Notes under the pieces: generated by a model
Database searches by the model: none
What the model was told of the DNA's origin: nothing
Seen by the model: the letters and a program-made list of their open reading frames with translations, nothing else
NCBI GenBank assembly: GCA_964057225.1
Contig: OZ059895.1
Coordinates: 310,001 to 374,000, forward strand
Reading direction: 5' to 3'
From: Auanema rhodensis
Lineage: Eukaryota; Animalia; Nematoda
Length of the DNA: 64,000 nucleotides
Program-made: the position numbers and the translations under genes
Shown here: one piece after another, positions 23,107 to 64,000 of the stretch
How the letters are laid out: each line of letters starts with the position of its first letter
Numbering within the stretch: the first letter of the stretch is position 1

Positions 23107-23482
23107 TTCAAAATAATTTAGCAAAAAGTAGATGTTTTTAGATTCCTTTTTTTAAGGCAAAGACGATGGACAATGTTATTCAACGAAAAAATTAATTCTT
23201 CAGGGTGAAAAAAAAATTAATTCTTCAGGGTGAAAATCGAGGATATAAGTGTGAACTTATATCAGTTGATATCTCGGTGCATTTTTAAGCTAGCGCAAAT
23301 TTGATAACACAGATCGACGCAGCTTAAAAATTCGCATCGAATGCACTATACTACATTGAGAAACGCTTGATACAAAAATTAGTTATGATTGTTTGAAAAA
23401 TGATGCATTAGTGTATGTTGAGTTTCCATGTACACTCAACATTGCTTCCAAAAACATTTTGACAAAAATTTTTTCGAAAAAT
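23107..23482 (+). repeat. First 376-bp monomer variant, carrying a 25-bp internal tandem duplication; about 22 forward copies at 23.2-35.6 and 46.1-48.0 kb, and 3 inverted copies at 51.4-52.1 kb
   Basis: aaaaattaattcttcagggtgaaaa is doubled at 23187-23236. The period here is 376. Confidence 0.95.
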
Positions 23483-38400: not shown

Positions 38401-41400
38401 AAAATCGAGGATATAAGTGTGAACTTATATCAGTTGATATCTCGGTGCATTTTTAAGCTAGCGCAAATCTGATAACACAGATCGACGCAGCTTAAAAATC
38501 CGCATCGAATGCACTATACTACATCAAGAAACGCTTGATACAAAAATTAGTTATGATCGTTTGAAAAATGATGCATTAGTGTATGTTGAGTTTCCATGTA
38601 CACTCAACATTGCTTCCAAAAACATTTTGACAAAAATTTTTTCGAAAAATTTCAAAATATTTTAGCAAAAAGTAGATGTTTTTAGATTCCATTTTTCAAG
38701 GCAAAGACGATAGGCAATGTTATTCAACGAAAAAATTAATTCTTCAGGGTGAAAATCGAGGATATAAGTGTGAACTTATATCAGTTGATATCTCGGTGCA
38801 TTTTTAAGCTAGCGCAAATCTGATAACACAGATCGACGCAGCTTAAAAATCCGCATCGAATGCACTATACTACATCAAGAAACGCTTGATACAAAAATTA
38901 GTTATGATCGTTTGAAAAATGATGCATTAGTGTATGTTGAGTTTCCATGTACACTCAACATTGCTTCCAAAAACATTTTGACAAAAATTTTTTCGAAAAA
39001 TTTCAAAATAATTTAGCAAAAAGTAGATGTTTTTAGATTCCATTTTTCAAGGCAAAGACGATAGGCAATGTTATTCAACGAAAAAATTAATTCTTCAGGG
39101 TGAAAATCGAGGATATAAGTGTGAACTTATATCAGTTGATATCTCGGTGCATTTTTAAGCTAGCGCAAATCTGATAACACAGATCGACGCAGCTTAAAAG
39201 TCCGCATCGAATGCACTATACTACATTGAGAAACGCTTGATACAAAAATTAGTTATGATTGTTTGAAAAATGATGCATTAGTGTATGTTGAGTTTCCATG
39301 TACACTCAACATTGCTTCCAAAAACATTTTGACAAAAATTTTTTCGAAAAATTTCAAAATAATTTAGCAAAAAGTAGGTGTTTTTAGATTCCTTTTTTTA
39401 AGGCAAAGACGATGGACAATGTTATTCAACGAAAAAATTAATTCTTCAGGGTGAAAATCGAGGATATAAGTGTGAACTTATATCAGTTGATATCTCGGTG
39501 CATTTTTAAGCTAGCGCAAATCTGATAACACAGATCGACGCAGCTTAAAAATCCGCATCGAATGCACTATACTACATCAAGAAACGCTTGATACAAAAAT
39601 TAGTTATGATCGTTTGAAAAATGATGCATTAGTGTATGTTGAGTTTCCATGTACACTCAACATTGCTTCCAAAAACATTTTGACAAAAATTTTTTCGAAA
39701 AATTTCAAAATAATTTAGCAAAAAGTAGATGTTTTTAGATTCCATTTTTCAAGGCAAAGACGATAGGCAATGTTATTCAACGAAAAAATTAATTCTTCAG
39801 GGTGAAAATCGAGGATATAAGTGTGAACTTATATCAGTTGATATCTCGGTGCATTTTTAAGCTAGCGCAAATCTGATAACACAGATCGACGCAGCTTAAA
39901 AATGAGCATCGAATGCACTATACTACATTGAGAAACGCTTGATACAAAAATTAGTTATGATCGTTTGAAAAATGATGCATTAGTGTATGTTGAGTTTCCA
40001 TGTACACACAACATTGCTTCCAAAAACATTTTGACAAAAACTTTTTCGAAAAATTTCAAAATAATTTAGCAAAAAGTAGATGTTTTTAGATTCTTTTTTT
40101 TAAGGCAAAGACGATGGACAATGTTATTCAACGAAAAAATTAATTCTTCAGGGTGAAAATCGAGGATATAAGTGTGAACTTATATCAGTTGATATCTCGG
40201 TGCATTTTTAAGCTAGCGCAAATCTGATAACACAGATCGACGCAGCTTAAAAATCCGCATCGAATGCACTATACTACATTGAGAAACGCTTGATACAAAA
40301 ATTAGTTATGATTGTTTGAAAAATGATGCATTAGTGTATGTTGAGTTTCCATGTACACTCAACATTGCTTCCAAAAACATTTTGACAAAAATTTTTTCGA
40401 AAAATTTCAAAATAATTTAGCAAAAAGTAGATGTTTTTAGATTACATTTTTCAAGGCAAAGACGATAGGCAATGTTATTCAACGAAAAAATTAATTCTTC
40501 AGGGTGAAAATCGAGGATATAAGTGTGAACTTATATCAGTTCATATCTCGGTGCATTTTTAAGCTAGCGCAAATCTGATAACACAGATCGACGCAGCTTA
40601 AAAGTCCGCATCGAATGCACTATACTACATTGAGAAACGCTTGATACAAAAATTAGTTATGATTGTTTGAAAAATGATGCATTAGTGTATGTTGAGTTTC
40701 CATGTACACTCAACATTGCTTCCAAAAACATTTTGACAAAAATTTTTTCGAAAAATTTCAAAATAATTTAGCAAAAAGTAGATGTTTTTAGATTCCTTTT
40801 TTTAAGGCAAAGACGATGGACAATGTTATTCAACGAAAAAATTAATTCTTCAGGGTGAAAATCGAGGATATAAGTGTGAACTTATATCAGTTGATATCTC
40901 GGTGCATTTTTAAGCTAGCGCAAATCTGATAACACAGATCGACGCAGCTTAAAAATCCGCATCGAATGCACTATACTACATTGAGAAACGCTTGATACAA
41001 AAATTAGTTATGATTGTTTGAAAAATGATGCATTAGTGTATGTTGAGTTTCCATGTACACTCAACATTGCTTCCAAAAACATTTTGACAAAAATTTTTTC
41101 GAAAAATTTCAAAATAATTTAGCAAAAAGTAGATGTTTTTAGATTCCTTTTTTTAAGGCAAAGACGATGGACAATGTTATTCAACGAAAAAATTAATTCT
41201 TCAGGGTGAAAATCGAGGATATAAGTGTGAACTTATATCAGTTGATATCTCGGTGCATTTTTAAGCTAGCGCAAATCTGATAACACAGATCGACGCAGCT
41301 TAAAAATCCGCATCGAATGCACTATACTACATCAAGAAACGCTTGATACAAAAATTAGTTATGATCGTTTGAAAAATGATGCATTAGTGTATGTTGAGTT

Positions 41401-42895
41401 TCCATGTACACTCAACATTGCTTCCAAAAACATTTTGACAAAAATTTTTTCGAAAAATTTCAAAATAATTTAGCAAAAAGTAGATGTTTTTAGATTTCAT
41501 TTTTCAAGGCAAAGACGATAGGCAATGTTATTCAACGAAAAAATTAATTCTTCAGGGTGAAAATCGAGGATATAAGTGTGAACTTATATCAGTTGATATC
41601 TCGGTGCATTTTTAAGCTAGCGCAAATCTGATAACACAGATCGACGCAGCTTAAAAATCCGCATCGAATGCACTATACTACATTGAGAAACGCTTGATAC
41701 AAAAATTAGTTATGATTGTTTGAAAAATGATGCATTAGTGTATGTTGAGTTTCCATGTACACTCAACATTGCTTCCAAAAACATTTTGACAAAAATTTTT
41801 TCGAAAAATTTCAAAATAATTTAGCAAAAAGTAGATGTTTTTAGATTCCTTTTTTTAAGGCAAAGACGATGGACAATGTTATTCAACGAAAAAATTAATT
41901 CTTCAGGGTGAAAATCGAGGATATAAGTGTGAACTTATATCAGTTGATATCTCGGTGCATTTTTAAGCTAGCGCAAATCTGATAACACAGATCGACGCAG
42001 CTTAAAAATCCGCATCGAATGCACTATACTACATCAAGAAACGCTTGATACAAAAATTAGTTATGATCGTTTGAAAAATGATGCATTAGTGTATGTTGAG
42101 TTTCCATGTACACTCAACATTGCTTCCAAAAACATTTTGACAAAAATTTTTTCGAAAAATTTCAAAATATTTTAGCAAAAAGTAGATGTTTTTAGATTCC
42201 ATTTTTCAAGGCAAAGACGATAGGCAATGTTATTCAACGAAAAAATTAATTCTTCAGGGTGAAAATCGAGGATATAAGTGTGAACTTATATCAGTTGATA
42301 TCTCGGTGCATTTTTAAGCTAGCGCAAATCTGATAACACAGATCGACGCAGCTTAAAAATCCGCATCGAATGCACTATACTACATCAAGAAACGCTTGAT
42401 ACAAAAATTAGTTATGATCGTTTGAAAAATGATGCATTAGTGTATGTTGAGTTTCCATGTACACTCAACATTGCTTCCAAAAACATTTTGACAAAAATTT
42501 TTTCGAAAAATTTCAAAATAATTTAGCAAAAAGTAGATGTTTTTAGATTCCATTTTTCAAGGCAAAGACGATAGGCAATGTTATTCAACGAAAAAATTAA
42601 TTCTTCAGGGTGAAAATCGAGGATATAAGTGTGAACTTATATCAGTTGATATCTCGGTGCATTTTTAAGCTAGCGCAAATCTGATAACACAGATCGACGC
42701 AGCTTAAAAGTCCGCATCGAATGCACTATACTACATTGAGAAACGCTTGATACAAAAATTAGTTATGATTGTTTGAAAAATGATGCATTAGTGTATGTTG
42801 AGTTTCCATGTACACTCAACATTGCTTCCAAAAACATTTTGACAAAAATTTTTTCGAAAAATTTCAAAATAATTTAGCAAAAAGTAGGTGTTTTT

Positions 42896-45800
42896 AGATT
42901 CCTTTTTTTAAGGCAAAGACGATGGACAATGTTATTCAACGAAAAAATTAATTCTTCAGGGTGAAAATCGAGGATATAAGTGTGAACTTATATCAGTTGA
43001 TATCTCGGTGCATTTTTAAGCTAGCGCAAATCTGATAACACAGATCGACGCAGCTTAAAAATCCGCATCGAATGCACTATACTACATCAAGAAACGCTTG
43101 ATACAAAAATTAGTTATGATCGTTTGAAAAATGATGCATTAGTGTATGTTGAGTTTCCATGTACACTCAACATTGCTTCCAAAAACATTTTGACAAAAAT
43201 TTTTTCGAAAAATTTCAAAATAATTTAGCAAAAAGTAGATGTTTTTAGATTCCATTTTTCAAGGCAAAGACGATAGGCAATGTTATTCAACGAAAAAATT
43301 AATTCTTCAGGGTGAAAATCGAGGATATAAGTGTGAACTTATATCAGTTGATATCTCGGTGCATTTTTAAGCTAGCGCAAATCTGATAACACAGATCGAC
43401 GCAGCTTAAAAATGAGCATCGAATGCACTATACTACATTGAGAAACGCTTGATACAAAAATTAGTTATGATCGTTTGAAAAATGATGCATTAGTGTATGT
43501 TGAGTTTCCATGTACACACAACATTGCTTCCAAAAACATTTTGACAAAAACTTTTTCGAAAAATTTCAAAATAATTTAGCAAAAAGTAGATGTTTTTAGA
43601 TTCTTTTTTTTAAGGCAAAGACGATGGACAATGTTATTCAACGAAAAAATTAATTCTTCAGGGTGAAAATCGAGGATATAAGTGTGAACTTATATCAGTT
43701 GATATCTCGGTGCATTTTTAAGCTAGCGCAAATCTGATAACACAGATCGACGCAGCTTAAAAATCCGCATCGAATGCACTATACTACATTGAGAAACGCT
43801 TGATACAAAAATTAGTTATGATTGTTTGAAAAATGATGCATTAGTGTATGTTGAGTTTCCATGTACACTCAACATTGCTTCCAAAAACATTTTGACAAAA
43901 ATTTTTTCGAAAAATTTCAAAATAATTTAGCAAAAAGTAGATGTTTTTAGATTACATTTTTCAAGGCAAAGACGATAGGCAATGTTATTCAACGAAAAAA
44001 TTAATTCTTCAGGGTGAAAATCGAGGATATAAGTGTGAACTTATATCAGTTCATATCTCGGTGCATTTTTAAGCTAGCGCAAATCTGATAACACAGATCG
44101 ACGCAGCTTAAAAGTCCGCATCGAATGCACTATACTACATTGAGAAACGCTTGATACAAAAATTAGTTATGATTGTTTGAAAAATGATGCATTAGTGTAT
44201 GTTGAGTTTCCATGTACACTCAACATTGCTTCCAAAAACATTTTGACAAAAATTTTTTCGAAAAATTTCAAAATAATTTAGCAAAAAGTAGATGTTTTTA
44301 GATTCCTTTTTTTAAGGCAAAGACGATGGACAATGTTATTCAACGAAAAAATTAATTCTTCAGGGTGAAAATCGAGGATATAAGTGTGAACTTATATCAG
44401 TTGATATCTCGGTGCATTTTTAAGCTAGCGCAAATCTGATAACACAGATCGACGCAGCTTAAAAATCCGCATCGAATGCACTATACTACATCAAGAAACG
44501 CTTGATACAAAAATTAGTTATGATCGTTTGAAAAATGATGCATTAGTGTATGTTGAGTTTCCATGTACACTCAACATTGCTTCCAAAAACATTTTGACAA
44601 AAATTTTTTCGAAAAATTTCAAAATAATTTAGCAAAAAGTAGATGTTTTTAGATTCCATTTTTCAAGGCAAAGACGATAGGCAATGTTATTCAACGAAAA
44701 AATTAATTCTTCAGGGTGAAAATCGAGGATATAAGTGTGAACTTATATCAGTTGATATCTCGGTGCATTTTTAAGCTAGCGCAAATCTGATAACACAGAT
44801 CGACGCAGCTTAAAAATGAGCATCGAATGCACTATACTACATTGAGAAACGCTTGATACAAAAATTAGTTATGATCGTTTGAAAAATGATGCATTAGTGT
44901 ATGTTGAGTTTCCATGTACACACAACATTGCTTCCAAAAACATTTTGACAAAAACTTTTTCGAAAAATTTCAAAATAATTTAGCAAAAAGTAGATGTTTT
45001 TAGATTCTTTTTTTTAAGGCAAAGACGATGGACAATGTTATTCAACGAAAAAATTAATTCTTCAGGGTGAAAATCGAGGATATAAGTGTGAACTTATATC
45101 AGTTGATATCTCGGTGCATTTTTAAGCTAGCGCAAATCTGATAACACAGATCGACGCAGCTTAAAAATCCGCATCGAATGCACTATACTACATTGAGAAA
45201 CGCTTGATACAAAAATTAGTTATGATTGTTTGAAAAATGATGCATTAGTGTATGTTGAGTTTCCATGTACACTCAACATTGCTTCCAAAAACATTTTGAC
45301 AAAAATTTTTTCGAAAAATTTCAAAATAATTTAGCAAAAAGTAGATGTTTTTAGATTACATTTTTCAAGGCAAAGACGATAGGCAATGTTATTCAACGAA
45401 AAAATTAATTCTTCAGGGTGAAAATCGAGGATATAAGTGTGAACTTATATCAGTTGATATCTCGGTGCATTTTTAAGCTAGCGCAAATCTGATAACACAG
45501 ATCGACGCAGCTTAAAAATCCGCATCGAATGCACTATACTACATTGAGAAACGCTTGATACAAAAATTAGTTATGATTGTTTGAAAAATGATGCATTAGT
45601 GTATGTTGAGTTTCCATGTGCACTCAACATTGCTTCCAAAAACATTTTGACAAAAATTTTTTCGAAAAATTTCAAAATAATTTAGCAAAAAGTAGATGTT
45701 TTTAGATTCCTTTTTTTAAGGCAAAGACGATGGACAATGTTATTCAACGAAAAAATTGATTCTTCAGGGTGAAAATCGAGGATATAAGTGTGAACTTATA

Positions 45801-48800
45801 TCAGTTGATATCTCGGTGCATTTTTAAGCTAGCGCAAATTTGATAACACAGATCGACGCAGCTTAAAAATCCGCATCGAATGCACTATACTACATTGAGA
45901 AACGCTTGATACAAAATTTAGTTATGATTGTTTGAAAAATGATGCATTAGTGTATGTTAAGTTTCCATGTACACTCAACATTGCTTCCAAAAACATTTTG
46001 ACAAAACTTTTTTCGAAAAATTTCAAAATAATTTAGCAAAAAGTAGATGTTTTTAGATTCCTTTTTTTAAGGCAAAGACGATGGACAATGTTATTCAACG
46101 AAAAAATTAATTCTTCAGGGTGAAAAAAAAATTAATTCTTCAGGGTGAAAATCGAGGATATAAGTGTGAACTTATATCAGTTGATATCTCGGTGCATTTT
46201 CAAGCTAGCGCAAATCTGATAACACAGATCGACGCAGCTTAAAAATCCGCATCGAATGCACTATACTACATTGAGAAACGCTTGATACAAAAATTAGTTA
46301 TGATTGTTTGAAAAATGATGCATTAGTGTATGTTGAGTTTCCATGTACACTCAACATTGCTTCCAAAAACATTTTGACAAAAATTTTTTCGAAAAATTTC
46401 AAAATAATTTAGCAAAAAGTAGATGTTTTTAGATTCTTTTTTTTAAGGCAAAGACGATGGACAATGTTATTCAACGAAAAAATTAATTCTTCAGGGTGAA
46501 AAAAAAATTAATTCTTCAGGGTGAAAATCGAGGATATAAGTGTGAACTTATATCAGTTGATATCTCGGTGCATTTTCAAGCTAGCGCAAATCTGATAACA
46601 CAGATCGACGCAGCTTAAAAATCCGCATCGAATGCACTATACTACATTGAGAAACGCTTGATACAAAAATTAGTTATGATTGTTTGAAAAATGATGCATT
46701 AGTGTATGTTGAGTTTCCATGTACACTCAACATTGCTTCCAAAAACATTTTGACAAAAATTTTTTCGAAAAATTTCAAAATAATTTAGCAAAAAGTAGAT
46801 GTTTTTAGATTCCTTTTTTTGAGGCAAAGACGATGGACAATGTTATTCAACGAAAAAATTAATTCTTCAGGGTGAAAAAAAAATTAATTCTTCAGGGTGA
46901 AAATCGAGGATATAAGTGTGAACTTATATCAGTTGATATCTCGGTGCATTTTCAAGCTAGCGCAAATCTGATAACACAGATCGACGCAGCTTAAAAATTC
47001 GCATCGAATGCACTATACTACATTGAGAAACGCTTGATACAAAAATTAGTTATGATTGTTTGAAAAATGATGCATTAGTGTATGTTGAGTTTCCATGTAC
47101 ACTCAACATTGCTTCCAAAAACATTTTGACAAAAATTTTTTCGAAAAATTTCAAAATAATTTAGCAAAAAATAGATGTTTTTAGATTCCATTTTTTAAGG
47201 CAAAGACGATAGGCAATGTTATTCAACGAAAAAATTAATTCTTCAGGGTGAAAATCGAGGATATAAGTGTGAACTTATATCAGTTGATATCTCGGTGCAT
47301 TTTTAAGCTAGCGCAAATCTGATAACACAGATCGACGCAGCTTAAAAATCCGCATCGAATGCACTATACTACATTGAGAAACGCTTGATACAAAAATTAG
47401 TTATGATTGTTTGAAAAATGATGCATTAGTGTATGTTGAGTTTCCATGTACACTCAACATTGCTTCCAAAAACATTTTGACAAAAATTTTTTCGAAAAAT
47501 TTCAAAATAATTTAGCAAAAAAATTGATGTTTTTAGATTCCATTTTTCAAGGCAAAGACGATAGGCAATGTTATTCAACGAAAAAATTAATTCTTCAGGG
47601 TGAAAATCGAGGATATAAGTGTGAACTTATATCAGTTGATATCTCGGTGCATTTTTAAGCTAGCGCAAATCTGATAACACAGATCGACGCAGCTTAAAAA
47701 TCCGCATCGAATGCACTATACTACATTGAGAAACGCTTGATACAAAAATTAGTTATGATTGTTTGAAAAATGATGCATTAGTGTATGTTGAGTTTCCATG
47801 TACACTCAACATTGCTTCCAAAAACATTTTGACAAAAATTTTTTCGAAAAATTTCAAAATAATTTAGCAAAAAGTAGATGTTTTTAGATTCCTTTTTTTA
47901 AGGCAAAGACGATGGACAATGTTATTCAACGAAAAAATTAATTCTTCAGGGTGAAAAAAAAATTAATTCTTCAGGGTGAAAATCGAGGATATAAGTGTAA
48001 ACTTATATCAGTTGATATCTCGGTGCATTTTTAAGCTAGCGCGAATCTGATAACACAGATCGACGCAGCTTAAAAATCCGCATCGAATGCACTATACTAC
48101 ATTGAGAAACGCTTGATACAAAAATTAGTTATGATTGTTTGAAAAATGATGCATTAGTGTATGTTGAGTTTCCATGTACACTCAACATTGCTTCCAAAAA
48201 CATTTTGACAAAAATTTTTTCGGAAAATTTCAAAATAATTTAGCAAAAAATAGATGTTTTTAGATTCCATTTTTCAAGGCAAAGACGATAGGCAATGTTA
48301 TTCAACGAAAAAATTAATTCTTCAGGGTGAAAATCGAGGATATAAGTGTGAACTTATATCAGTTGATATCTCGGTGCATTTTTAAGCTAGCGCAAATCTG
48401 ATAACACAGATCGACGCAGCTTAAAAATCCGCATCGAATGCACTATACTACATTGAGAAACGCTTGATACAAAAATTAGTTATGATTGTTTGAAAAATGA
48501 TGCATTATGTATGTTGAGTTTCCATGTACACTCAACATTGCTTCCAAAAACATTTTGACAAAAATTTTTTCGAAAAATTTCAAAATAATTTAGCAAAAAG
48601 TAGATGTTTTTAGATTCCTTTTTTTAAGGCAAAGACGATGGACAATGATATTCAACGAAAAAATTAATTCTTCAGGGTGAAAATCGAGGATATAAGTGTG
48701 AACTTATATCAGTTGATATCTCGGTGCATTTTCAAGCTAGCGCAAATCTGATAACACAGATCGACGCAGCTTAAAAATCCGCATCGAATGCACTATACTA

Positions 48801-51800
48801 CATTGAGAAACGCTTGATACAAAAATTAGTTATGATTGTTTGAAAAATGATGCATTAGTGTATGTTGAGTTTCCATGTACACTCAACATTGCTTCCAAAA
48901 ACATTTTGACAAAAATTTTTTCGAAAAATTTCAAAATAATTTAGCAAAAAGTAGATGTTTTTAGATTCCATTTTTCAAGGCAAAGACGATAGGCAATGTT
49001 ATTCAACGAAAAAATTAGTCAAAATGTTTTTGGAAGCAATGTTGAGTGTACATGGAAACTCAACATACACTAATGCATAATTTTTCAAACAATCATAACT
49101 AATTTTTGTATCAAGCGTTTCTCAATGTAGTATAGTGCATTCGATGCGGATTTTTAAGCTGCGTCGATCTGTGTTATCAGATTTGCGCTAGCTTAAAAAT
49201 GCACCGAGATATCAACTGATATAAGTTCACACTTATATCCTCGATTTTCACCCTGAAGAATTAATTTTTTCGTTGAATAACATTGCCTATCGTCTTTGCC
49301 TTGAAAAATGGAATCTAAAAACATCTACTTTTTGCTAAATTATTTTGAAATTTTTCGAAAAAATTTTTGTCAAAATGTTTTTGGAAGCAATGTTGAGTGT
49401 ACATGGAAACTCAACATACACTAATGCATCATTTTTCAAACAATCATAACTAATTTTTGTATCAAGCGTTTCTCAATGTAGTATAGTGCATTCGATGCGG
49501 ATTTTTAAGCTGCGTCGATCTGTGTTATCAGATTTGCGCTAGCTTGAAAATGCACCGAGATATCAACTGATATAAGTTCACACTTATATCCTCGATTTTC
49601 ACCCTGAAGAATTAATTTTTTCGTTGAATATCATTGTCCATCGTCTTTGCCTTAAAAAAAGGAATCTAAAAACATCTACTTTTTGCTAAATTATTTTGAA
49701 ATTTTTCGAAAAAATTTTTGTCAAAATGTTTTTGGAAGCAATGTTGAGTGTACATGGAAACTCAACATACATAATGCATCATTTTTCAAACAATCATAAC
49801 TAATTTTTGTATCAAGCGTTTCTCAATGTAGTATAGTGCATTCGATGCGGATTTTTAAGCTGCGTCGATCTGTGTTATCAGATTTGCGCTAGCTTAAAAA
49901 TGCACCGAGATATCAACTGATATAAGTTCACACTTATATCCTCGATTTTCACCCTGAAGAATTAATTTTTTCGTTGAATAACATTGCCTATCGTCTTTGC
50001 CTTGAAAAATGGAATCTAAAAACATCTATTTTTTGCTAAATTATTTTGAAATTTTCCGAAAAAATTTTTGTCAAAATGTTTTTGGAAGCAATGTTGAGTG
50101 TACATGGAAACTCAACATACACTAATGCATCATTTTTCAAACAATCATAACTAATTTTTGTATCAAGCGTTTCTCAATGTAGTATAGTGCATTCGATGCG
50201 GATTTTTAAGCTGCGTCGATCTGTGTTATCAGATTCGCGCTAGCTTAAAAATGCACCGAGATATCAACTGATATAAGTTTACACTTATATCCTCGATTTT
50301 CACCCTGAAGAATTAATTTTTTCGTTGAATAACATTGTCCATCGTCTTTGCCTTAAAAAAAGGAATCTAAAAACATCTACTTTTTGCTAAATTATTTTGA
50401 AATTTTTCGAAAAAATTTTTGTCAAAATGTTTTTGGAAGCAATGTTGAGTGTACATGGAAACTCAACATACACTAATGCATCATTTTTCAAACAATCATA
50501 ACTAATTTTTGTATCAAGCGTTTCTCAATGTAGTATAGTGCATTCGATGCGGATTTTTAAGCTGCGTCGATCTGTGTTATCAGATTTGCGCTAGCTTAAA
50601 AATGCACCGAGATATCAACTGATATAAGTTCACACTTATATCCTCGATTTTCACCCTGAAGAATTAATTTTTTCGTTGAATAACATTGCCTATCGTCTTT
50701 GCCTTGAAAAATGGAATCTAAAAACATCAATTTTTTTGCTAAATTATTTTGAAATTTTTCGAAAAAATTTTTGTCAAAATGTTTTTGGAAGCAATGTTGA
50801 GTGTACATGGAAACTCAACATACACTAATGCATCATTTTTCAAACAATCATAACTAATTTTTGTATCAAGCGTTTCTCAATGTAGTATAGTGCATTCGAT
50901 GCGGATTTTTAAGCTGCGTCGATCTGTGTTATCAGATTTGCGCTAGCTTAAAAATGCACCGAGATATCAACTGATATAAGTTCACACTTATATCCTCGAT
51001 TTTCACCCTGAAGAATTAATTTTTTCGTTGAATAACATTGCCTATCGTCTTTGCCTTAAAAAATGGAATCTAAAAACATCTATTTTTTGCTAAATTATTT
51101 TGAAATTTTTCGAAAAAATTTTTGTCAAAATGTTTTTGGAAGCAATGTTGAGTGTACATGGAAACTCAACATACACTAATGCATCATTTTTCAAACAATC
51201 ATAACTAATTTTTGTATCAAGCGTTTCTCAATGTAGTATAGTGCATTCGATGCGAATTTTTAAGCTGCGTCGATCTGTGTTATCAGATTTGCGCTAGCTT
51301 GAAAATGCACCGAGATATCAACTGATATAAGTTCACACTTATATCCTCGATTTTCACCCTGAAGAATTAATTTTTTTTTCACCCTGAAGAATTAATTTTT
51401 TCGTTGAATAACATTGTCCATCGTCTTTGCCTTAAAAAAAGGAATCTAAAAACATCTACTTTTTGCTAAATTATTTTGAAATTTTTCGAAAAAATTTTTG
51501 TCAAAATGTTTTTGGAAGCAATGTTGAGTGTACATGGAAACTCAACATACACTAATGCATCATTTTTCAAACAATCATAACTAATTTTTGTATCAAGCGT
51601 TTCTCAATGTAGTATAGTGCATTCGATGCGGATTTTTAAGCTGCGTCGATCTGTGTTATCAGATTTGCGCTAGCTTGAAAATGCACCGAGATATCAACTG
51701 ATATAAGTTCACACTTATATCCTCGATTTTCACCCTGAAGAATTAATTTTTTTTTCACCCTGAAGAATTAATTTTTTCGTTGAATAACATTGTCCATCGT

Positions 51801-54800
51801 CTTTGCCTTAAAAGAAGGAATCTAAAAACATCTACTTTTTGCTAAATTATTTTGAAATTTTTCGAAAAAATTTTTGTCAAAATGTTTTTGGAAGCAATGT
51901 TGAGTGTACATGGAAACTCAACATACACTAATGCATCATTTTTCAAACAATCATAACTAATTTTTGTATCAAGCGTTTCTCAATGTAGTATAGTGCATTC
52001 GATGCGGATTTTTAAGCTGCGTCGATCTGTGTTATCAGATTTGCGCTAGCTTGAAAATGCACCGAGATATCAACTGATATAAGTTCACACTTATATCCTC
52101 GATTTTCACCCTGAAGAATTAATTTTTTTTTCACCCTGAAGAATTAATTTTTTCGTTGAATAACATTGTCCATCGTCTTTGCCTTAAAAAAAGGAATCTA
52201 AAAACATCTACTTTTTGCTAAATTATTTTGAAATTTTTCGAAAAAAGTTTTGTCAAAATGTTTTTGGAAGCAATGTTGAGTGTACATGGAAACTTAACAT
52301 ACACTAATGCATCATTTTTCAAACAATCATAACTAAATTTTGTATCAAGCGTTTCTCAATGTAGTATAGTGCATTCGATGCGGATTTTTAAGCTGCGTCG
52401 ATCTGTGTTATCAAATTTGCGCTAGCTTAAAAATGCACCGAGATATCAACTGATATAAGTTCACACTTATATCCTCGATTTTCACCCTGAAGAATCAATT
52501 TTTTCGTTGAATAACATTGTCCATCGTCTTTGCCTTAAAAAAAGGAATCTAAAAACATCTACTTTTTGCTAAATTATTTTGAAATTTTTCGAAAAAATTT
52601 TTGTCAAAATGTTTTTGGAAGCAATGTTGAGTGCACATGGAAACTCAACATACACTAATGCATCATTTTTCAAACAATCATAACTAATTTTTGTATCAAG
52701 CGTTTCTCAATGTAGTATAGTGCATTCGATGCGGATTTTTAAGCTGCGTCGATCTGTGTTATCAGATTTGCGCTAGCTTAAAAATGCACCGAGATATCAA
52801 CTGATATAAGTTCACACTTATATCCTCGATTTTCACCCTGAAGAATTAATTTTTTCGTTGAATAACATTGCCTATCGTCTTTGCCTTGAAAAATGTAATC
52901 TAAAAACATCTACTTTTTGCTAAATTATTTTGAAATTTTTCGAAAAAATTTTTGTCAAAATGTTTTTGGAAGCAATGTTGAGTGTACATGGAAACTCAAC
53001 ATACACTAATGCATCATTTTTCAAACAATCATAACTAATTTTTGTATCAAGCGTTTCTCAATGTAGTATAGTGCATTCGATGCGGATTTTTAAGCTGCGT
53101 CGATCTGTGTTATCAGATTTGCGCTAGCTTAAAAATGCACCGAGATATCAACTGATATAAGTTCACACTTATATCCTCGATTTTCACCCTGAAGAATTAA
53201 TTTTTTCGTTGAATAACATTGTCCATCGTCTTTGCCTTAAAAAAAAGAATCTAAAAACATCTACTTTTTGCTAAATTATTTTGAAATTTTTCGAAAAAGT
53301 TTTTGTCAAAATGTTTTTGGAAGCAATGTTGTGTGTACATGGAAACTCAACATACACTAATGCATCATTTTTCAAACGATCATAACTAATTTTTGTATCA
53401 AGCGTTTCTCAATGTAGTATAGTGCATTCGATGCTCATTTTTAAGCTGCGTCGATCTGTGTTATCAGATTTGCGCTAGCTTAAAAATGCACCGAGATATC
53501 AACTGATATAAGTTCACACTTATATCCTCGATTTTCACCCTGAAGAATTAATTTTTTCGTTGAATAACATTGCCTATCGTCTTTGCCTTGAAAAATGGAA
53601 TCTAAAAACATCTACTTTTTGCTAAATTATTTTGAAATTTTTCGAAAAAATTTTTGTCAAAATGTTTTTGGAAGCAATGTTGAGTGTACATGGAAACTCA
53701 ACATACACTAATGCATCATTTTTCAAACGATCATAACTAATTTTTGTATCAAGCGTTTCTTGATGTAGTATAGTGCATTCGATGCGGATTTTTAAGCTGC
53801 GTCGATCTGTGTTATCAGATTTGCGCTAGCTTAAAAATGCACCGAGATATCAACTGATATAAGTTCACACTTATATCCTCGATTTTCACCCTGAAGAATT
53901 AATTTTTTCGTTGAATAACATTGTCCATCGTCTTTGCCTTAAAAAAAGGAATCTAAAAACATCTACTTTTTGCTAAATTATTTTGAAATTTTTCGAAAAA
54001 ATTTTTGTCAAAATGTTTTTGGAAGCAATGTTGAGTGTACATGGAAACTCAACATACACTAATGCATCATTTTTCAAACAATCATAACTAATTTTTGTAT
54101 CAAGCGTTTCTCAATGTAGTATAGTGCATTCGATGCGGACTTTTAAGCTGCGTCGATCTGTGTTATCAGATTTGCGCTAGCTTAAAAATGCACCGAGATA
54201 TCAACTGATATAAGTTCACACTTATATCCTCGATTTTCACCCTGAAGAATTAATTTTTTCGTTGAATAACATTGCCTATCGTCTTTGCCTTGAAAAATGT
54301 AATCTAAAAACATCTACTTTTTGCTAAATTATTTTGAAATTTTTCGAAAAAATTTTTGTCAAAATGTTTTTGGAAGCAATGTTGAGTGTACATGGAAACT
54401 CAACATACACTAATGCATCATTTTTCAAACAATCATAACTAATTTTTGTATCAAGCGTTTCTCAATGTAGTATAGTGCATTCGATGCGGATTTTTAAGCT
54501 GCGTCGATCTGTGTTATCAGATTTGCGCTAGCTTAAAAATGCACCGAGATATCAACTGATATAAGTTCACACTTATATCCTCGATTTTCACCCTGAAGAA
54601 TTAATTTTTTCGTTGAATAACATTGTCCATCGTCTTTGCCTTAAAAAAAAGAATCTAAAAACATCTACTTTTTGCTAAATTATTTTGAAATTTTTCGAAA
54701 AAGTTTTTGTCAAAATGTTTTTGGAAGCAATGTTGTGTGTACATGGAAACTCAACATACACTAATGCATCATTTTTCAAACGATCATAACTAATTTTTGT

Positions 54801-55358
54801 ATCAAGCGTTTCTCAATGTAGTATAGTGCATTCGATGCGGACTTTTAAGCTGCGTCGATCTGTGTTATCAGATTTGCGCTAGCTTAAAAATGCACCGAGA
54901 TATCAACTGATATAAGTTCACACTTATATCCTCGATTTTCACCCTGAAGAATTAATTTTTTCGTTGAATAACATTGCCTATCGTCTTTGCCTTGAAAAAT
55001 GGAATCTAAAAACATCTACTTTTTGCTAAATTATTTTGAAATTTTTCGAAAAAATTTTTGTCAAAATGTTTTTGGAAGCAATGTTGAGTGTACATGGAAA
55101 CTCAACATACACTAATGCATCATTTTTCAAACGATCATAACTAATTTTTGTATCAAGCGTTTCTTGATGTAGTATAGTGCATTCGATGCGGATTTTTAAG
55201 CTGCGTCGATCTGTGTTATCAGATTTGCGCTAGCTTAAAAATGCACCGAGATATCAACTGATATAAGTTCACACTTATATCCTCGATTTTCACCCTGAAG
55301 AATTAATTTTTTCGTTGAATAACATTGTCCATCGTCTTTGCCTTAAAAAAAGGAATCT
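42896..55358. repeat. Large inverted repeat 1: arms 42896-49017 and 49262-55358, 244-bp spacer
   Basis: Mirror coordinates sum to 98279 near the centre and to 98254 beyond a 25-bp indel. I found only about five differences between the arms. Confidence 0.9.
49018..55358 (-). repeat. Inverted satellite block (about 18 monomers); 49262-55358 mirrors 42896-49017
   Basis: Reverse-complement monomers. Private variants mirror the left side: gacaatgata 48648 pairs with 49631, and ORF 47446-47658(+) pairs with 50596-50808(-). Confidence 0.96.
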
Positions 55359-57999
55359 TTCGAAAAATTTCAAAATATTTTAGCAAAAAGTAGATGTTTT
55401 TAGATTCCATTTTTCAAGGCAAAGACGATAGGCAATGTTATTCAACGAAAAAATCGAATGCACTATACTACATTGAGAAACGCTTGATACAAAAATTAGT
55501 TATGATTGTTTGAAAAATGATGCATTAGTGTATGTTGAGTTTCCATGTACACTCAACATTGCTTCCAAAAACATTTTGACAAAAATTTTTTCGAAAAATT
55601 TCAAAATAATTTAGCAAAAAGTAGGTGTTTTTAGATTCCTTTTTTTAAGGCAAAGACGATGGACAATGTTATTCAACGAAAAAATTAATTCTTCAGGGTG
55701 AAAATCGAGGATATAAGTGTGAACTTATATCAGTTGATATCTCGGTGCATTTTTAAGCTAGCGCAAATCTGATAACACAGATCGACGCAGCTTAAAAATC
55801 CGCATCGAATGCACTATACTACATCAAGAAACGCTTGATACAAAAATTAGTTATGATCGTTTGAAAAATGATGCATTAGTGTATGTTGAGTTTCCATGTA
55901 CACTCAACATTGCTTCCAAAAACATTTTGACAAAAATTTTTTCGAAAAATTTCAAAATAATTTAGCAAAAAGTAGATGTTTTTAGATTCCATTTTTCAAG
56001 GCAAAGACGATAGGCAATGTTATTCAACGAAAAAATTAATTCTTCAGGGTGAAAATCGAGGATATAAGTGTGAACTTATATCAGTTGATATCTCGGTGCA
56101 TTTTTAAGCTAGCGCAAATCTGATAACACAGATCGACGCAGCTTAAAAATGAGCATCGAATGCACTATACTACATTGAGAAACGCTTGATACAAAAATTA
56201 GTTATGATCGTTTGAAAAATGATGCATTAGTGTATGTTGAGTTTCCATGTACACACAACATTGCTTCCAAAAACATTTTGACAAAAACTTTTTCGAAAAA
56301 TTTCAAAATAATTTAGCAAAAAGTAGATGTTTTTAGATTCTTTTTTTTAAGGCAAAGACGATGGACAATGTTATTCAACGAAAAAATTAATTCTTCAGGG
56401 TGAAAATCGAGGATATAAGTGTGAACTTATATCAGTTGATATCTCGGTGCATTTTTAAGCTAGCGCAAATCTGATAACACAGATCGACGCAGCTTAAAAA
56501 TCCGCATCGAATGCACTATACTACATTGAGAAACGCTTGATACAAAAATTAGTTATGATTGTTTGAAAAATGATGCATTAGTGTATGTTGAGTTTCCATG
56601 TACACTCAACATTGCTTCCAAAAACATTTTGACAAAAATTTTTTCGAAAAATTTCAAAATAATTTAGCAAAAAGTAGATGTTTTTAGATTACATTTTTCA
56701 AGGCAAAGACGATAGGCAATGTTATTCAACGAAAAAATTAATTCTTCAGGGTGAAAATCGAGGATATAAGTGTGAACTTATATCAGTTGATATCTCGGTG
56801 CATTTTTAAGCTAGCGCAAATCTGATAACACAGATCGACGCAGCTTAAAAGTCCGCATCGAATGCACTATACTACATTGAGAAACGCTTGATACAAAAAT
56901 TAGTTATGATTGTTTGAAAAATGATGCATTAGTGTATGTTGAGTTTCCATGTACACTCAACATTGCTTCCAAAAACATTTTGACAAAAATTTTTTCGAAA
57001 AATTTCAAAATAATTTAGCAAAAAGTAGATGTTTTTAGATTCCTTTTTTTAAGGCAAAGACGATGGACAATGTTATTCAACGAAAAAATTAATTCTTCAG
57101 GGTGAAAATCGAGGATATAAGTGTGAACTTATATCAGTTGATATCTCGGTGCATTTTTAAGCTAGCGCAAATCTGATAACACAGATCGACGCAGCTTAAA
57201 AATCCGCATCGAATGCACTATACTACATCAAGAAACGCTTGATACAAAAATTAGTTATGATCGTTTGAAAAATGATGCATTAGTGTATGTTGAGTTTCCA
57301 TGTACACTCAACATTGCTTCCAAAAACATTTTGACAAAAATTTTTTCGAAAAATTTCAAAATAATTTAGCAAAAAGTAGATGTTTTTAGATTCCATTTTT
57401 CAAGGCAAAGACGATAGGCAATGTTATTCAACGAAAAAATTAATTCTTCAGGGTGAAAATCGAGGATATAAGTGTGAACTTATATCAGTTGATATCTCGG
57501 TGCATTTTTAAGCTAGCGCAAATCTGATAACACAGATCGACGCAGCTTAAAAATGAGCATCGAATGCACTATACTACATTGAGAAACGCTTGATACAAAA
57601 ATTAGTTATGATCGTTTGAAAAATGATGCATTAGTGTATGTTGAGTTTCCATGTACACACAACATTGCTTCCAAAAACATTTTGACAAAAACTTTTTCGA
57701 AAAATTTCAAAATAATTTAGCAAAAAGTAGATGTTTTTAGATTCTTTTTTTTAAGGCAAAGACGATGGACAATGTTATTCAACGAAAAAATTAATTCTTC
57801 AGGGTGAAAATCGAGGATATAAGTGTGAACTTATATCAGTTGATATCTCGGTGCATTTTTAAGCTAGCGCAAATCTGATAACACAGATCGACGCAGCTTA
57901 AAAATCCGCATCGAATGCACTATACTACATTGAGAAACGCTTGATACAAAAATTAGTTATGATTGTTTGAAAAATGATGCATTAGTGTATGTTGAGTTT
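52992..57999. repeat. Large inverted repeat 2: arms about 52992-55358 and 55633-57999, 274-bp spacer
   Basis: Both arms carry the 42896-45260 haplotype series. ggaatct ending at 55358 pairs with agattcc starting at 55633. Confidence 0.82.
55358..57999 (+). repeat. Forward satellite block, a further copy of the 42.15-45.26 kb haplotype series
   Basis: Variant order aaaatatttt, gtaggtg (55621), catcaag, aatgagc, acacacaac, gattacat, aaaagtcc, catcaag, aatgagc matches 42.15-45.26 kb (offset 12737 after 55454). Confidence 0.9.
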
Positions 58000-60205
58000 A
58001 AATGATGCATTAGTGTATGTTGAGTTTCCATGTACACTCAACATTGCTTCCAAAAACATTTTGACAAAAATTTTTTCGAAACATTTCAAAATAATTTAGC
58101 AAAAAGTAGATGTTTTTAGATTCCTTTTTTCAAGGCAAAGACGATAGACAATGTTATTCAACGAAAAAATTAATTCTTCAGGGAGAAAATCGAGGATATA
58201 AGTGTGAACTTATATCAGTTGATATCTCGGTGCATTTTTAAGCTAGCGCAAATCTGATAACACAAATCGACGCAGCTTAAAAATCCGCATCGAATGCACT
58301 ATACTACATTGAGAAACGCTTATTACAAAAATTAGTTATGATCGTTTGAAAAATGATGCATTAGTGTATGTTGAGTTTCCATGTACACTCAACATTGCTT
58401 CCAAAAACATTTTGACAAAAATTTTTTCGAAAAATTTCAAAATAATTTAGCAAAAAGTAGATGTTTTTAGATTTCATTTTTCAAGGCAAAGACGATAGAC
58501 AATGTTATTCAACGAAAAAATTAATTCTTCAGGGTGAAAATCGAGGATATAAGTGTGAACTTATATCAGTTGATATCTCGGTGCATTTTTAAGCTAGCGC
58601 AAATCTGATAACACAGATCGACGCAGCTTAAAAATCCGCATCGAATGCACTATACTACATTGAGAAACGCTTAATACAAAAATTAGTTATGATCGTTTGA
58701 AAAATGATGCATTAGTGTATGTTGAGTTTCCATGTACACTCAACATTGCTTCCAAAAACATTTTGACAAAAATTTTTTCGAAAAATTTCAAAATAATTTA
58801 GCAAAAAGTAGATGTTTTTAGATTTCATTTTTCAAGGCAAAGACGATAGACAATGTTATTCAACAAAAAAATTAATTCTTCAGGGTGAAAATCGAGGATA
58901 TAAGTGTGAACTTATATCAGTTGATATCTCGGTGCATTTTTAAGCTACCGCAAATCTGATAACACAGATCGACGCAGCTTAAAAATCCGCATCGAATGCA
59001 CTATACTACATTGAGAAACGCTTAATACAAAAATTAGTTATGATCGTTTGAAAAATGATGCATTAGTGTATGTTGAGTTTCCATGTACACTCAACATTGC
59101 TTCCAAAAACATTTTGACAAAAATTTTTTCGAAAAATTTCAAAATAATTTAGCAAAAAGTAGATGTTTTTAGATTTCATTTTTCAAGGCAAAGACGATAG
59201 ACAATGTTATTCAACGAAAAAATTAATTCTTCAGGGTGAAAATCGAGGATATAAGTGTGAACTTATATCAGTTGATATCTCGGTGCATTTTTAAGCTAGC
59301 GCAAATCTGATAACACAGATTGACGCAGCTTAAAAATCCGCATCGAGTGCACTATACTACATTGAGAAACGCTTAATACAAAAATTAGTTTTGATCGTTT
59401 GAAAAATGATGCATTAGTGTATGTTGAGTTTCCATGTACACTCAACATTGCTTCCAAAAACATTTTGACAAAAATTTTTTCGAAAAATTTCAAAATAATT
59501 TAGCAAAAAGTAGATGTTTTTAGATTCCATTTTTCAAAGCAAAGACGATGGACAATGTTATTCAACGAAAAAATTAATTCTTCAGGGTGAAAATCGAGGA
59601 TATAAGTGTGAACTTATATCAGTTGATATCTCGGTGCCTTTTTAAGCTAGCGCAAATCTGATAACACAGATTGACGCAGCTTAAAAATCCGCATCGAGTG
59701 CACTATACTACATTGAGAAACGCTTAATACAAAAATTAGTTCTGATCGTTTGAAAAATGATGCATTAGTGTATGTTGAGTTTCCATGTACACTCAACATT
59801 GCTTCCAAAAACATTTTGACAAAAATTTTTTCGAAAAATTTCAAAATAATTTAGCAAAAAGTAGATGTTTTTAGATTCCATTTTTCAAAGCAAAGACGAT
59901 GGACAATGTTATTCAACGAAAAAATTAATTCTTCAGGGTGAAAATCGAGGATATAAGTGTGAACTTATATCAGTTGATATCTCGGTGCATTTTTAAGCTA
60001 GCGCAAATCTGATAACACAGATCGACGCAGCTTAAAAATCCGCATCGAATGCACTATACTACATTGAGAAACGCTTAATACAAAAATTAGTTATGATCGT
60101 TTGAAAAATGATGCATTAGTGTATGTTGAGTTTCCATGTACACTCAACATTGCTTCCAAAAACATTTTGACAAAAATTTTTTCGAAACATTTCAAAATAG
60201 TTTAG
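58000..60205 (+). repeat. Forward satellite block with domain-B haplotypes (left arm plus spacer of the third palindrome)
   Basis: New variant set (gaaacattt, gggagaaa, cacaaatc, caacaaaa, gctaccg, catcgagt, caaagc), mirrored at 60204-62348. Confidence 0.92.
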
Positions 60206-62348
60206 TGTACATGGAAACTCAACATACACTAATGCATCATTTTTCAAACGATCATAACTAATTTTTGTATTAAGCGTTTCTCAATGTAGTATAGTGCATT
60301 CGATGCGGATTTTTAAGCTGCGTCGATCTGTGTTATCAGATTTGCGCTAGCTTAAAAATGCACCGAGATATCAACTGATATAAGTTCACACTTATATCCT
60401 CGATTTTCACCCTGAAGAATTAATTTTTTCGTTGAATAACATTGTCCATCGTCTTTGCTTTGAAAAATGGAATCTAAAAACATCTACTTTTTGCTAAATT
60501 ATTTTGAAATTTTTCGAAAAAATTTTTGTCAAAATGTTTTTGGAAGCAATGTTGAGTGTACATGGAAACTCAACATACACTAATGCATCATTTTTCAAAC
60601 GATCAAAACTAATTTTTGTATTAAGCGTTTCTCAATGTAGTATAGTGCACTCGATGCGGATTTTTAAGCTGCGTCAATCTGTGTTATCAGATTTGCGCTA
60701 GCTTAAAAAGGCACCGAGATATCAACTGATATAAGTTCACACTTATATCCTCGATTTTCACCCTGAAGAATTAATTTTTTCGTTGAATAACATTGTCCAT
60801 CGTCTTTGCTTTGAAAAATGGAATCTAAAAACATCTACTTTTTGCTAAATTATTTTGAAATTTTTCGAAAAAATTTTTGTCAAAATGTTTTTGGAAGCAA
60901 TGTTGAGTGTACATGGAAACTCAACATACACTAATGCATCATTTTTCAAACGATCAAAACTAATTTTTGTATTAAGCGTTTCTCAATGTAGTATAGTGCA
61001 CTCGATGCGGATTTTTAAGCTGCGTCAATCTGTGTTATCAGATTTGCGCTAGCTTAAAAATGCACCGAGATATCAACTGATATAAGTTCACACTTATATC
61101 CTCGATTTTCACCCTGAAGAATTAATTTTTTCGTTGAATAACATTGTCTATCGTCTTTGCCTTGAAAAATGAAATCTAAAAACATCTACTTTTTGCTAAA
61201 TTATTTTGAAATTTTTCGAAAAAATTTTTGTCAAAATGTTTTTGGAAGCAATGTTGAGTGTACATGGAAACTCAACATACACTAATGCATCATTTTTCAA
61301 ACGATCATAACTAATTTTTGTATTAAGCGTTTCTCAATGTAGTATAGTGCATTCGATGCGGATTTTTAAGCTGCGTCGATCTGTGTTATCAGATTTGCGG
61401 TAGCTTAAAAATGCACCGAGATATCAACTGATATAAGTTCACACTTATATCCTCGATTTTCACCCTGAAGAATTAATTTTTTTGTTGAATAACATTGTCT
61501 ATCGTCTTTGCCTTGAAAAATGAAATCTAAAAACATCTACTTTTTGCTAAATTATTTTGAAATTTTTCGAAAAAATTTTTGTCAAAATGTTTTTGGAAGC
61601 AATGTTGAGTGTACATGGAAACTCAACATACACTAATGCATCATTTTTCAAACGATCATAACTAATTTTTGTATTAAGCGTTTCTCAATGTAGTATAGTG
61701 CATTCGATGCGGATTTTTAAGCTGCGTCGATCTGTGTTATCAGATTTGCGCTAGCTTAAAAATGCACCGAGATATCAACTGATATAAGTTCACACTTATA
61801 TCCTCGATTTTCACCCTGAAGAATTAATTTTTTCGTTGAATAACATTGTCTATCGTCTTTGCCTTGAAAAATGAAATCTAAAAACATCTACTTTTTGCTA
61901 AATTATTTTGAAATTTTTCGAAAAAATTTTTGTCAAAATGTTTTTGGAAGCAATGTTGAGTGTACATGGAAACTCAACATACACTAATGCATCATTTTTC
62001 AAACGATCATAACTAATTTTTGTAATAAGCGTTTCTCAATGTAGTATAGTGCATTCGATGCGGATTTTTAAGCTGCGTCGATTTGTGTTATCAGATTTGC
62101 GCTAGCTTAAAAATGCACCGAGATATCAACTGATATAAGTTCACACTTATATCCTCGATTTTCTCCCTGAAGAATTAATTTTTTCGTTGAATAACATTGT
62201 CTATCGTCTTTGCCTTGAAAAAAGGAATCTAAAAACATCTACTTTTTGCTAAATTATTTTGAAATGTTTCGAAAAAATTTTTGTCAAAATGTTTTTGGAA
62301 GCAATGTTGAGTGTACATGGAAACTCAACATACACTAATGCATCATTT
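58000..62348. repeat. Large inverted repeat 3: arms 58000-60144 and 60204-62348, 59-bp spacer
   Basis: Mirror coordinates sum to 120348 (ORF pairs 59296/61052 and 59647/60701; SNP pair 58082/62266). One mismatch was seen (agttctgat near 59742 vs atcaaaact near 60606). Confidence 0.93.
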
Positions 62349-64000
62349 TTCAAACGATCATAACTAATTTGTGTATTAAGCGTTTCTCGATGTAGTATAG
62401 TGCATTCGATGCGGATTTTTAAGCTGCGTCGATCTGTGTTATCAGATTTGCGCTAGCTTAAAAATGCACCGAGATATCAACTGATATAAGTTCACACTTA
62501 TATCCTCGATTTTCACCCTGAAGAATTAATTTTTTCGTTGAATAACATTGTCTATCGTCTTTGCCTTGAAAAATGGAATCTAAAAACATCTACTTTTTGC
62601 TAAATTATTTTGAAATTTTTCGAAAAAATCTTTGTCAAAATGTTTTTGGAAGCAATGTTGAGTGTACATGGAAACTCAACATACACTAATGCATCATTTT
62701 TCAAACGATCATAACTAATTTTTGTATTAAGCGTTTCTCAATGTAGTATAGTGCATTCGATGCGGATTTTTAAGCTGCGTCGATTTGTGTTATCAGATTT
62801 GCGCTAGCTTAAAAATGCACCGAGATATCAACTGATATAAGTTCACACTTATATCCTCGATTTTCACCCTGAAGAATTAATTTTTTCGTTGAATAACATT
62901 GTCCATCGTCTTTGCCTTGAAAAAACGAATCTAAAAACATCTACTTTTTGCTAAACTATTTTGAAATTTTTCGAAAAAATTTTTGTCAAAATGTTTTTGG
63001 AAGCAATGTTGAGTGTACATGGTAACTCAACATACACTAATGCATCAGTTTTCAAACGATCATAACTAATTTTTGTATTAAGCGTTTCTCAATGTAGTAT
63101 AGTGCATTCGATGCGGATTTTTAAGCTGCGTCGATCTGTGTTATCAGATTTGCGCTAGCTTAAAAATGCACCGAGATATCAACTGATATAAGTTCACACT
63201 TATATCCTCGATTTTCACCCTGAAGAATTAATTTTTTTGTTGAATAACATTGTCTATCGTCTTTGCCTTGAAAAATGAAATCTAAAAACATCTACTTTTT
63301 GCTAAATTATTTTGAAATTTTTCGAAAAAATTTTTGTCAAAATGTTTTTGGAAGCAATGTTGAGTGTACATGGAAACTCAACATACACTAATGCATCATT
63401 TTTCAAACGATCATAACTAATTTTTGTATTGAGCGTTTCTCAATGTAGTATAGTGCATTCGATGCGGATTTTTAAGCTGCGTCGATTTGTGTTATCAGAT
63501 TTGCGCTAGCTTAAAAATGCACCGAGATATCAACTGATATAAGTTCACACTTATATCCTCGATTTTCTCCCTGAAGAATTAATTTTTTCGTTGAATAACA
63601 TTGTCCATCGTCTTTGCCTTGAAAAAAGGAATCTAAAAACATCTACTTTTTGCTAAATTATTCTGAAATGTTTCGAAAAAATTTTTGTCAAAATGTTTTT
63701 GGAAGCAATGTTGAGTGTACATGGAAACTCAACATACACTAATGCATCATTTTTCAAACGATCATAACTAATTTGTGTATTAAGCGTTTCTCAATGTAGT
63801 ATAGTGCATTCGATGCGGATTTTTAAGCTGCGTCGATCTGTGTTATCAAATTTGCGCTAGCTTAAAAATGCACCGAGATATCAACTGATATAAGTTCACA
63901 CTTATATCCTCGATTTTCACCCTGAAGAATTAATTTTTTCGTTGAATAACATTGTCTATCGTCTTTGCCTTGAAAAATGGAATCTAAAAACATCTATTTT
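60204..64000 (-). repeat. Inverted satellite block (domain B) running off the window end
   Basis: Reverse-complement monomers from agtgtacatgg (60204) to the end of the window. Confidence 0.97.

Follow-up and report, generated by a model that had tools for sequence, protein, structure and literature searches.

The 64-kb stretch of DNA analysed in this study (the window) is a satellite array, and at 42150-62348 the array contains a zone in which the satellite changes strand. The changes of strand are flanked by copies of nearby satellite sequence in mirror order, and ~11 kb of the present array (49018-60203) is made up of such copies. We put at about an even chance the reading that this zone is a real and very recent complex rearrangement within one 351-bp satellite, produced by copying that switched strands, either in a single episode or in a few that were closely spaced. 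A simple two-break inversion is excluded because sequence has been duplicated in mirror order. The main alternatives are a stepwise series of fold-backs at broken ends, and an artefact of sequencing or assembly.

Mirror-order copies in the satellite array

The whole 64 kb was identified by Tandem Repeats Finder as one AT-rich satellite with a period of 351 and 96-98% matches. The window is 31% GC. One monomer was mapped on the window to assign orientation. Monomers are on the plus strand up to 49017, on the minus strand at 49018-55358, on the plus strand from 55359 to ~60205, and on the minus strand at 60204-64000. GC and AT skews flip sign near 49, 55-56 and 60 kb. The region from 42 to 64 kb contains 0 Rfam families, 0 tRNAs and 0 open reading frames of at least 90 amino acids.

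Relations between the blocks were established using exact k-mer diagonals on both strands, best matches of 702-bp chunks, and global alignments. The initial annotation of this DNA had traced a path of blocks and templates from private single nucleotide polymorphisms, and all three approaches reproduced that path almost base for base. The best matches of the chunks at 49-58 kb follow the template order that had been given for them within 42-49 kb. The template pieces reported as 42150-42246 and 42717-45260 appear here as 42151-42244 and 42716-45262, the shift being 1-2 bases of microhomology. A fold-back at 60204 and an out-of-register join at 57999/58000 were both found; the earlier path did not include the spacer S1. 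The blocks and related features are listed below.

42151-42244, + strand: likeliest template for the 94-bp piece; the C3 template starts 472 bp away and the C2 template ends 652 bp away
42896-49017, + strand: C1, forward segment that serves as left arm of palindrome 1 and as template for the mirror copy at 49262-55358
49018-49261, - strand: S1, 244-bp spacer, in phase with C2 and with no forward partner, by monomer mapping
49262-55358, - strand: C2, inverted copy of 42896-49017; over 6122 bp the two differ by 7 mismatches and a single 25-bp gap
55359-55452, + strand: I, templated piece of 94 bp between junctions J2 and J3, exact at 42151-42244
55453-57999, + strand: C3, third copy, corresponding to 42716-45262 with 1 mismatch in 2547 bp (44052 vs 56789)
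58000-60144, + strand: B1, left arm of palindrome 3; 60204-62348 is its mirror, with 1 mismatch in 2145 bp (59742 vs 60606)
60145-60203, + strand: 59-bp spacer of palindrome 3; the + strand continues to 60205 and the - strand runs from 60204
60204-62348, - strand: B2, right arm of palindrome 3 and mirror of B1, running into the reverse array up to the window end
62349-64000, - strand: reverse array with no mirror partner in the window; best matches have 5-12 differences per 702 bp and none is both colinear and inverted
37990-44491, + strand: exact 2992-bp pair (37990-40981 = 41500-44491), from a tandem duplication of 10 monomers (3510 bp) that overlaps with part of the template

C1 and C2 are the arms of palindrome 1. 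Since S1 has no forward partner, the spacer of this palindrome is 244 bp. In palindrome 2, 52992-55358 mirrors 55633-57999 with 3 clustered mismatches in 2367 bp and a 274-bp spacer. Together with the 59-bp spacer of palindrome 3, these separate arms of 6.1, 2.4 and 2.1 kb, respectively, that are at least 99.9% identical. The colinear chunk match is unique at several points (e.g. 49370, 51827 and 52178), where it has 0 mismatches vs 6-9 for the runner-up. Monomer-length variants of 350, 352 and 376 bp reappear in mirror order. In the 376-bp variant, 25 bp within the 351-bp unit (as at 47932-47956) are duplicated in tandem, and monomers of this type occur in blocks at 22835-35948 and 45750-48333.

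Along the template the copy number is 2-3-2, with 42716-42895 present twice, 42896-45262 three times, and 45263-49017 twice. The earlier claim that 42896-45260 occurs three times as +,-,+ holds for the pattern, which extends to 45262, but not for the total. In addition to the 10-monomer tandem duplication, the template contains an internal 4-monomer repeat. These duplicates mean that the template sequence is present more than three times and that some assignments are ambiguous among paralogues. A register shift of 4 monomers (1404 bp) was considered as an alternative assignment; it removes the mismatch at 44052 and leaves a patch at 54839-54842.

The 94-bp piece is exact only at 42151-42244 and in the recent tandem duplicate of that sequence at 38641-38734, while ~17 other monomers are 1 base off. 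A candidate source at 48920-49013, which lies just before J1 and has the same end position in the monomer, was also considered; it has 1 mismatch, whereas 42151-42244 is exact and lies near the other breakpoints.

The blocks B1 and B2 had been described as a second satellite domain. This description was not retained, because the B monomers belong to the same 351-bp family and are only slightly diverged from those of domain A, the forward array. B and A monomers have ~8-10 differences per 351 bp compared with ~6-7 within A, and one site, position 238, is near-diagnostic.

Near-identity alone is ordinary in this array. Among the 702-bp chunks of the forward array 36% are duplicated exactly elsewhere in the window, and a chunk differs from its nearest neighbour by a median of 1 per 702 bp. 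The forward array (1-42000) has a fast turnover through multi-monomer duplications. Long exact pairs were also seen in the forward array at offsets of, for example, 5250, 3660, 3510 and 1404 bp. The exceptional feature of the zone is the mirror order.

The frequent forward duplications are a sign of active homogenisation, which could in principle act through unequal crossover or gene conversion on sequence rearranged by ordinary two-break inversions. Inversion, however, relocates sequence without duplicating it, and in the zone identical private variants are mirrored across each switch for 2.1-6.1 kb. The copies are also colinear with their templates, and conversion between inverted arrays would not yield a 6-kb colinear order that includes 350-, 352- and 376-bp monomers. 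We regard inversion followed by homogenisation as highly improbable. The initial annotation had likewise argued that the zone did not originate by two-break inversion, and the duplicative mirror-order copies bear this out.

It had further proposed that template switching built the boundary between the two oppositely oriented arrays. Strand-switching copies are indeed found at the boundary. The window contains no colinear mirror, however, of the reverse array to the right of 62348. The recent events therefore decorate the array boundary and do not explain the opposite orientation.

Junction anatomy and possible mechanisms

All five junction 31-mers occur once in the window. The junctions are given below with the strand and monomer position on each side.

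J1, 49017/49018: + strand, position 88, to - strand, position 332; 10-bp homology, with the join offset by 1-3 nucleotides (nt)
J2, 55358/55359: - strand, position 34, to + strand, position 342; 1 shared base
J3, 55452/55453: + strand, position 84, to + strand, position 205; 2 shared bases
J4, 57999/58000: + strand, position 294, to + strand, position 267; 0 shared bases, an out-of-register same-strand blunt join with 28 bases repeated
J5, 60204/60205: + strand, position 15, to - strand, position ~303; 2 shared bases

J1 is the only junction with substantial homology. The homology, CGAAAAAATT (49007-49016), is found on both templates directly before the join. CGAAAAAATT is an inverted repeat within the consensus monomer, where it occupies positions 78-87 and, as the reverse complement, 336-345, with the arms 248 bp apart. 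A random +/- join in the monomer would have 10 bp or more of homology no further than 3 nt away with a probability of 0.0013. A clean switch inside the homology was considered and rejected. The product retains 1 left-template base and skips 3 right-template bases, a variant absent from all monomers in the window.

As a single strand the monomer folds far better than shuffled sequences (z = -5.7), which indicates that it is rich in nested inverted repeats. A side observation was that two A/T-palindromic zones, at monomer positions 78-88 and 332-351, account for ~9% of the monomer and hold 4/10 junction ends (e.g. 49007-49017, 55359-55368 and 55446-55452). These zones may be fragile or hairpin-prone sites, an idea formed post hoc from five junctions.

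In the strand-switching origin that we favor, each turn would be made when a free 3' end anneals to the complementary strand 59 to ~750 bases away and is extended back along its own neighbourhood. Such an end could come from a stalled fork, as a nascent strand, or from a break that had been resected. Annealing at J1 would use the 10-bp inverted repeat, which is present in every monomer. The continuity of the J1 spacer with the inverted copy is what would be given by a switch from the leading strand to the lagging template, the first step of origin-dependent inverted-repeat amplification (ODIRA) (PMC10766183). The two same-strand joins would represent further short-range switches or small deletions. 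The zone could then be the product of one episode resembling microhomology-mediated break-induced replication (MMBIR) or fork stalling and template switching (FoSTeS), with an ODIRA-like first step, or of a few closely spaced episodes.

The same junctions can be arranged as a stepwise series of broken ends. A fold-back would produce palindrome 1, a break 6 kb away would be followed by a second fold-back that produces palindrome 2 with the 94-bp piece as filler, the end of the reverse array would fold separately to give palindrome 3, and the two products would be joined bluntly at 57999/58000. Such a series might be breakage-fusion-bridge-like on holocentric chromosomes, where bridges breaking near the fusion point leave short arms. 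It accounts for the presence of three palindromes, and for the fact that the arms of palindromes 2 and 3 both stop exactly at J4, where the overlap is 0 and the join is out of register. End joining typically leaves overlaps of 0-2 bp and templated filler. At J1 the shorter, reverse arm runs on from the spacer; if one 3' end had folded back, the spacer should instead belong to the original and longer arm, unless that arm was shortened by later breakage. The cost of the stepwise series is that several unprotected ends would have to exist across several germ-line cell cycles, and neither telomere repeats nor a terminal deletion is visible.

The initial annotation had attributed the zone to serial FoSTeS/MMBIR switching. 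The features of the product do match that class, but fold-backs with end joining match them equally. As far as the junction sequences go, a one-step MMBIR/FoSTeS event and serial fold-backs with a blunt join at 57999/58000 would fit equally well.

Private changes, source DNA and the reality of the zone

To polarise the sites at which copies differ, every monomer in the window served as reference. A C at 44052 is shared only by C1 and its tandem duplicate (40542); C2, C3 and 178 other monomers have G. As the derived C at 40542/44052 is missing from C2 and C3, the 10-monomer tandem duplication is younger than the inverted copies. C1 joined this later duplication, so the structure persisted through subsequent turnover of the array. 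C1 also has a unique derived G at 46821, and B1 has a unique C at 59742. Three private changes were found in C2. The first is a unique T-to-C double change in a T run at 51814/51817. The second is a 3-base patch at 54839-54842 that is identical to a monomer type 702 bp away and resembles a short conversion tract or the trace of a brief template switch. The third is the loss of one 25-bp unit at 50322/50323, opposite 47932-47956.

Every copy pair is equally diverged at ~0.05-0.1%, or 1-2 independent events per ~2.4 kb. Equal divergence is compatible with a star-like origin of all copies at once or with a few close episodes, but is not proof of either. For the stepwise series it means that no time lag is seen between the steps. 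C3 lacks the private patch of C2, which also speaks against the series. We consider the stepwise origin unlikely, though by no means as improbable as inversion followed by homogenisation.

The private changes also bear on whether the zone is real. A chimeric molecule, or a wrong path through the assembly graph in a repeat array beyond the resolution of the assembler, could generate inverted copies. Chimeras formed during multiple displacement amplification contain inverted copies, with join distances that peak near 80 and 250-300 nt and overlaps of 5-13 nt (PMC9984789). Two of the junctions are within the ranges reviewed there: J1 is inverted, with a 10-bp overlap and a distance of 244 bp, and J5 has a distance of 59 bp. 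Many palindromic reads have been found in single-worm nematode assemblies from amplified DNA (PMC10450198). If one locus had been traversed twice, however, the arms should not differ as they do. They differ at private sites in both directions, with 7, 3 and 1 mismatches in palindromes 1, 2 and 3, respectively, plus the 25-bp indel. Private derived changes on both sides indicate that the arms are separate loci. C2 and C3 retain the ancestral G at the site where the template now has the derived C, and so were not copied from the present-day template. Homopolymer lengths do not differ between the copies across kilobases of A/T runs, which indicates that the consensus is accurate.

The origin of the DNA bears on the same question. 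The probable source of the window is the genome described in a preprint on Auanema rhodense, which reports a 180.9-Mb germline assembly with seven chromosomes and 19,554 tRNA genes (10.64898/2026.08.27.747507). The chromosomes have multi-megabase end blocks of 167-504-bp tandem units that are eliminated from the soma (10.64898/2026.08.27.747507). The 351-bp satellite is probably part of this germline-restricted repeat DNA. Unamplified bulk DNA of an inbred line was sequenced using ~15-kb high-fidelity (HiFi) reads and assembled with hifiasm (10.64898/2026.08.27.747507). If this genome is the source, the use of unamplified DNA makes an amplification chimera unlikely, and a single read of that length could span J1-J4.

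Public reads were less informative. Over 55250-58150, which includes J2-J4, 4 runs from 3 studies yielded only 58-75-bp Logan contigs of enormous depth, and none of those listed bridges a junction. The junctions thus have no read confirmation, which leaves room for an artefact. Weighing this against the private changes and the probable HiFi source, we judge an artefact to be as unlikely as the stepwise origin.

The public data also contain information about the distribution of the satellite. Between 21 and 88% of sampled words were present in 13 public runs (4 studies, 4 coded organisms). In the stretch 55250-58150 the 351-bp satellite was seen at extreme abundance in short-read runs of at least 2 differently labelled organisms (A and C) from 3 studies. 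Such deep short-read coverage across differently labelled organisms shows that the 351-bp family is common to close relatives. A literature search found no paper that names a 351-bp nematode satellite, and no paper on inverted triplications within satellite arrays.

Several observations count against copying by strand switching as the origin of the zone. The J1 join sits 1-3 nt beyond the homology and so is not a clean switch. At J2-J5 the 0-2 shared bases suit end joining as well as they suit template switching. Exact multi-monomer duplicates are common and leave some template assignments ambiguous. The zone is not a textbook triplication, as the third copy is incomplete. The junctions are without read-level support, which the short contigs neither provide nor refute. 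Finally, the link to Auanema rhodense rests on consistency with the preprint.

Satellite arrays are usually held to expand and shrink through unequal exchange among copies in the same orientation. If the strand-switching origin is true, these copies, resolved to the breakpoint, would represent a second route of satellite growth, one that would explain why blocks of both orientations occur within arrays. J1 lies at an inverted repeat borne by the monomer itself, and the arrays concerned are probably confined to the germline and lost from the soma. It is tempting to generalize that the germline-only arrays of this nematode grow and flip orientation mainly by fold-back or template-switch copying primed at monomer inverted repeats, which would be a general, sequence-encoded route beside unequal exchange. 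We offer this generalization tentatively and hold it to be doubtful. A single locus is of limited value unless reads confirm its junctions. In the preprint, replication slippage is given as the cause of repeat growth, and orientation switches are not discussed (10.64898/2026.08.27.747507).

Comparison with known rearrangements

The forward/inverted/forward pattern of copies had been taken as the signature of ODIRA and of duplication-inverted triplication-duplication (DUP-TRP/INV-DUP). The zone, however, lacks several defining features of both. In ODIRA at yeast SUL1 the inverted-repeat arms are <100 bp apart, mostly 40-80 (PMC10766183). The zone resembles ODIRA in having forward, inverted and forward copies. 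J1 also lies at a pre-existing interrupted 10-bp inverted repeat whose loop is kept once, continuous with the inverted copy. It differs in that the arms of the inverted repeat are 248 bp apart, which gives the 244-bp spacer in the product. Only 1/2 of the inverted triplication junctions is at an inverted repeat, since J2 has a 1-bp overlap and a 94-bp insert. Finally, the third copy stops after 2.5 kb at template 45262, and the distal chromosome is not rejoined.

Carvalho and colleagues reportedly described DUP-TRP/INV-DUP in 2011 at the human MECP2 and PLP1 loci. The class is defined by inverted low-copy repeats that mediate one of the junctions. The 2-3-2 profile with an inverted middle copy is a likeness, as is one junction with little or no homology. 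The template side as it was before the event, all 49 kb of it, is in a single orientation. There are no inverted low-copy repeats of kilobase size here; the inverted homology at J1 is 10 bp. In addition, the 2-3-2 profile here arises from truncation of the third copy, and the inverted copy also spans the distal duplicated part.

Palindromes and fold-back duplications primed by short inverted repeats are known in human, in yeast, and in the rDNA palindrome of Tetrahymena. Fold-back inverted duplications share with the zone near-perfect palindromes that have single-copy spacers of tens to hundreds of bases, and here too a short inverted repeat adjoins the turn. The zone is unlike them in being interstitial, with three turns in 11 kb and satellite on both sides, and neither a new telomere nor a terminal deletion is seen.

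MMBIR and FoSTeS are matched by five joins with overlaps of 10 (offset), 1, 2, 0 and 2 bases, by the templated 94-bp insert, and by templates that lie within ~7 kb. The clustered changes in C2 (51814/51817) hint at the same class but are too few to count. This class is defined by outcome only, and the zone has no sign of a broken fork.

Chimeras of multiple displacement amplification resemble the zone in their alternating inverted copies, in join distances near 60 and 250 bases, and in an overlap of ~10 bases, as at J1. Unlike chimeras, the copies in the zone do not match the template exactly as it stands today, and they probably come from DNA that was not amplified.

Yeast, human disease loci and tumours offer well-known examples of fold-back inverted duplications, inverted triplications and templated insertions. 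The zone would add to these rearrangements a case from a nematode satellite.

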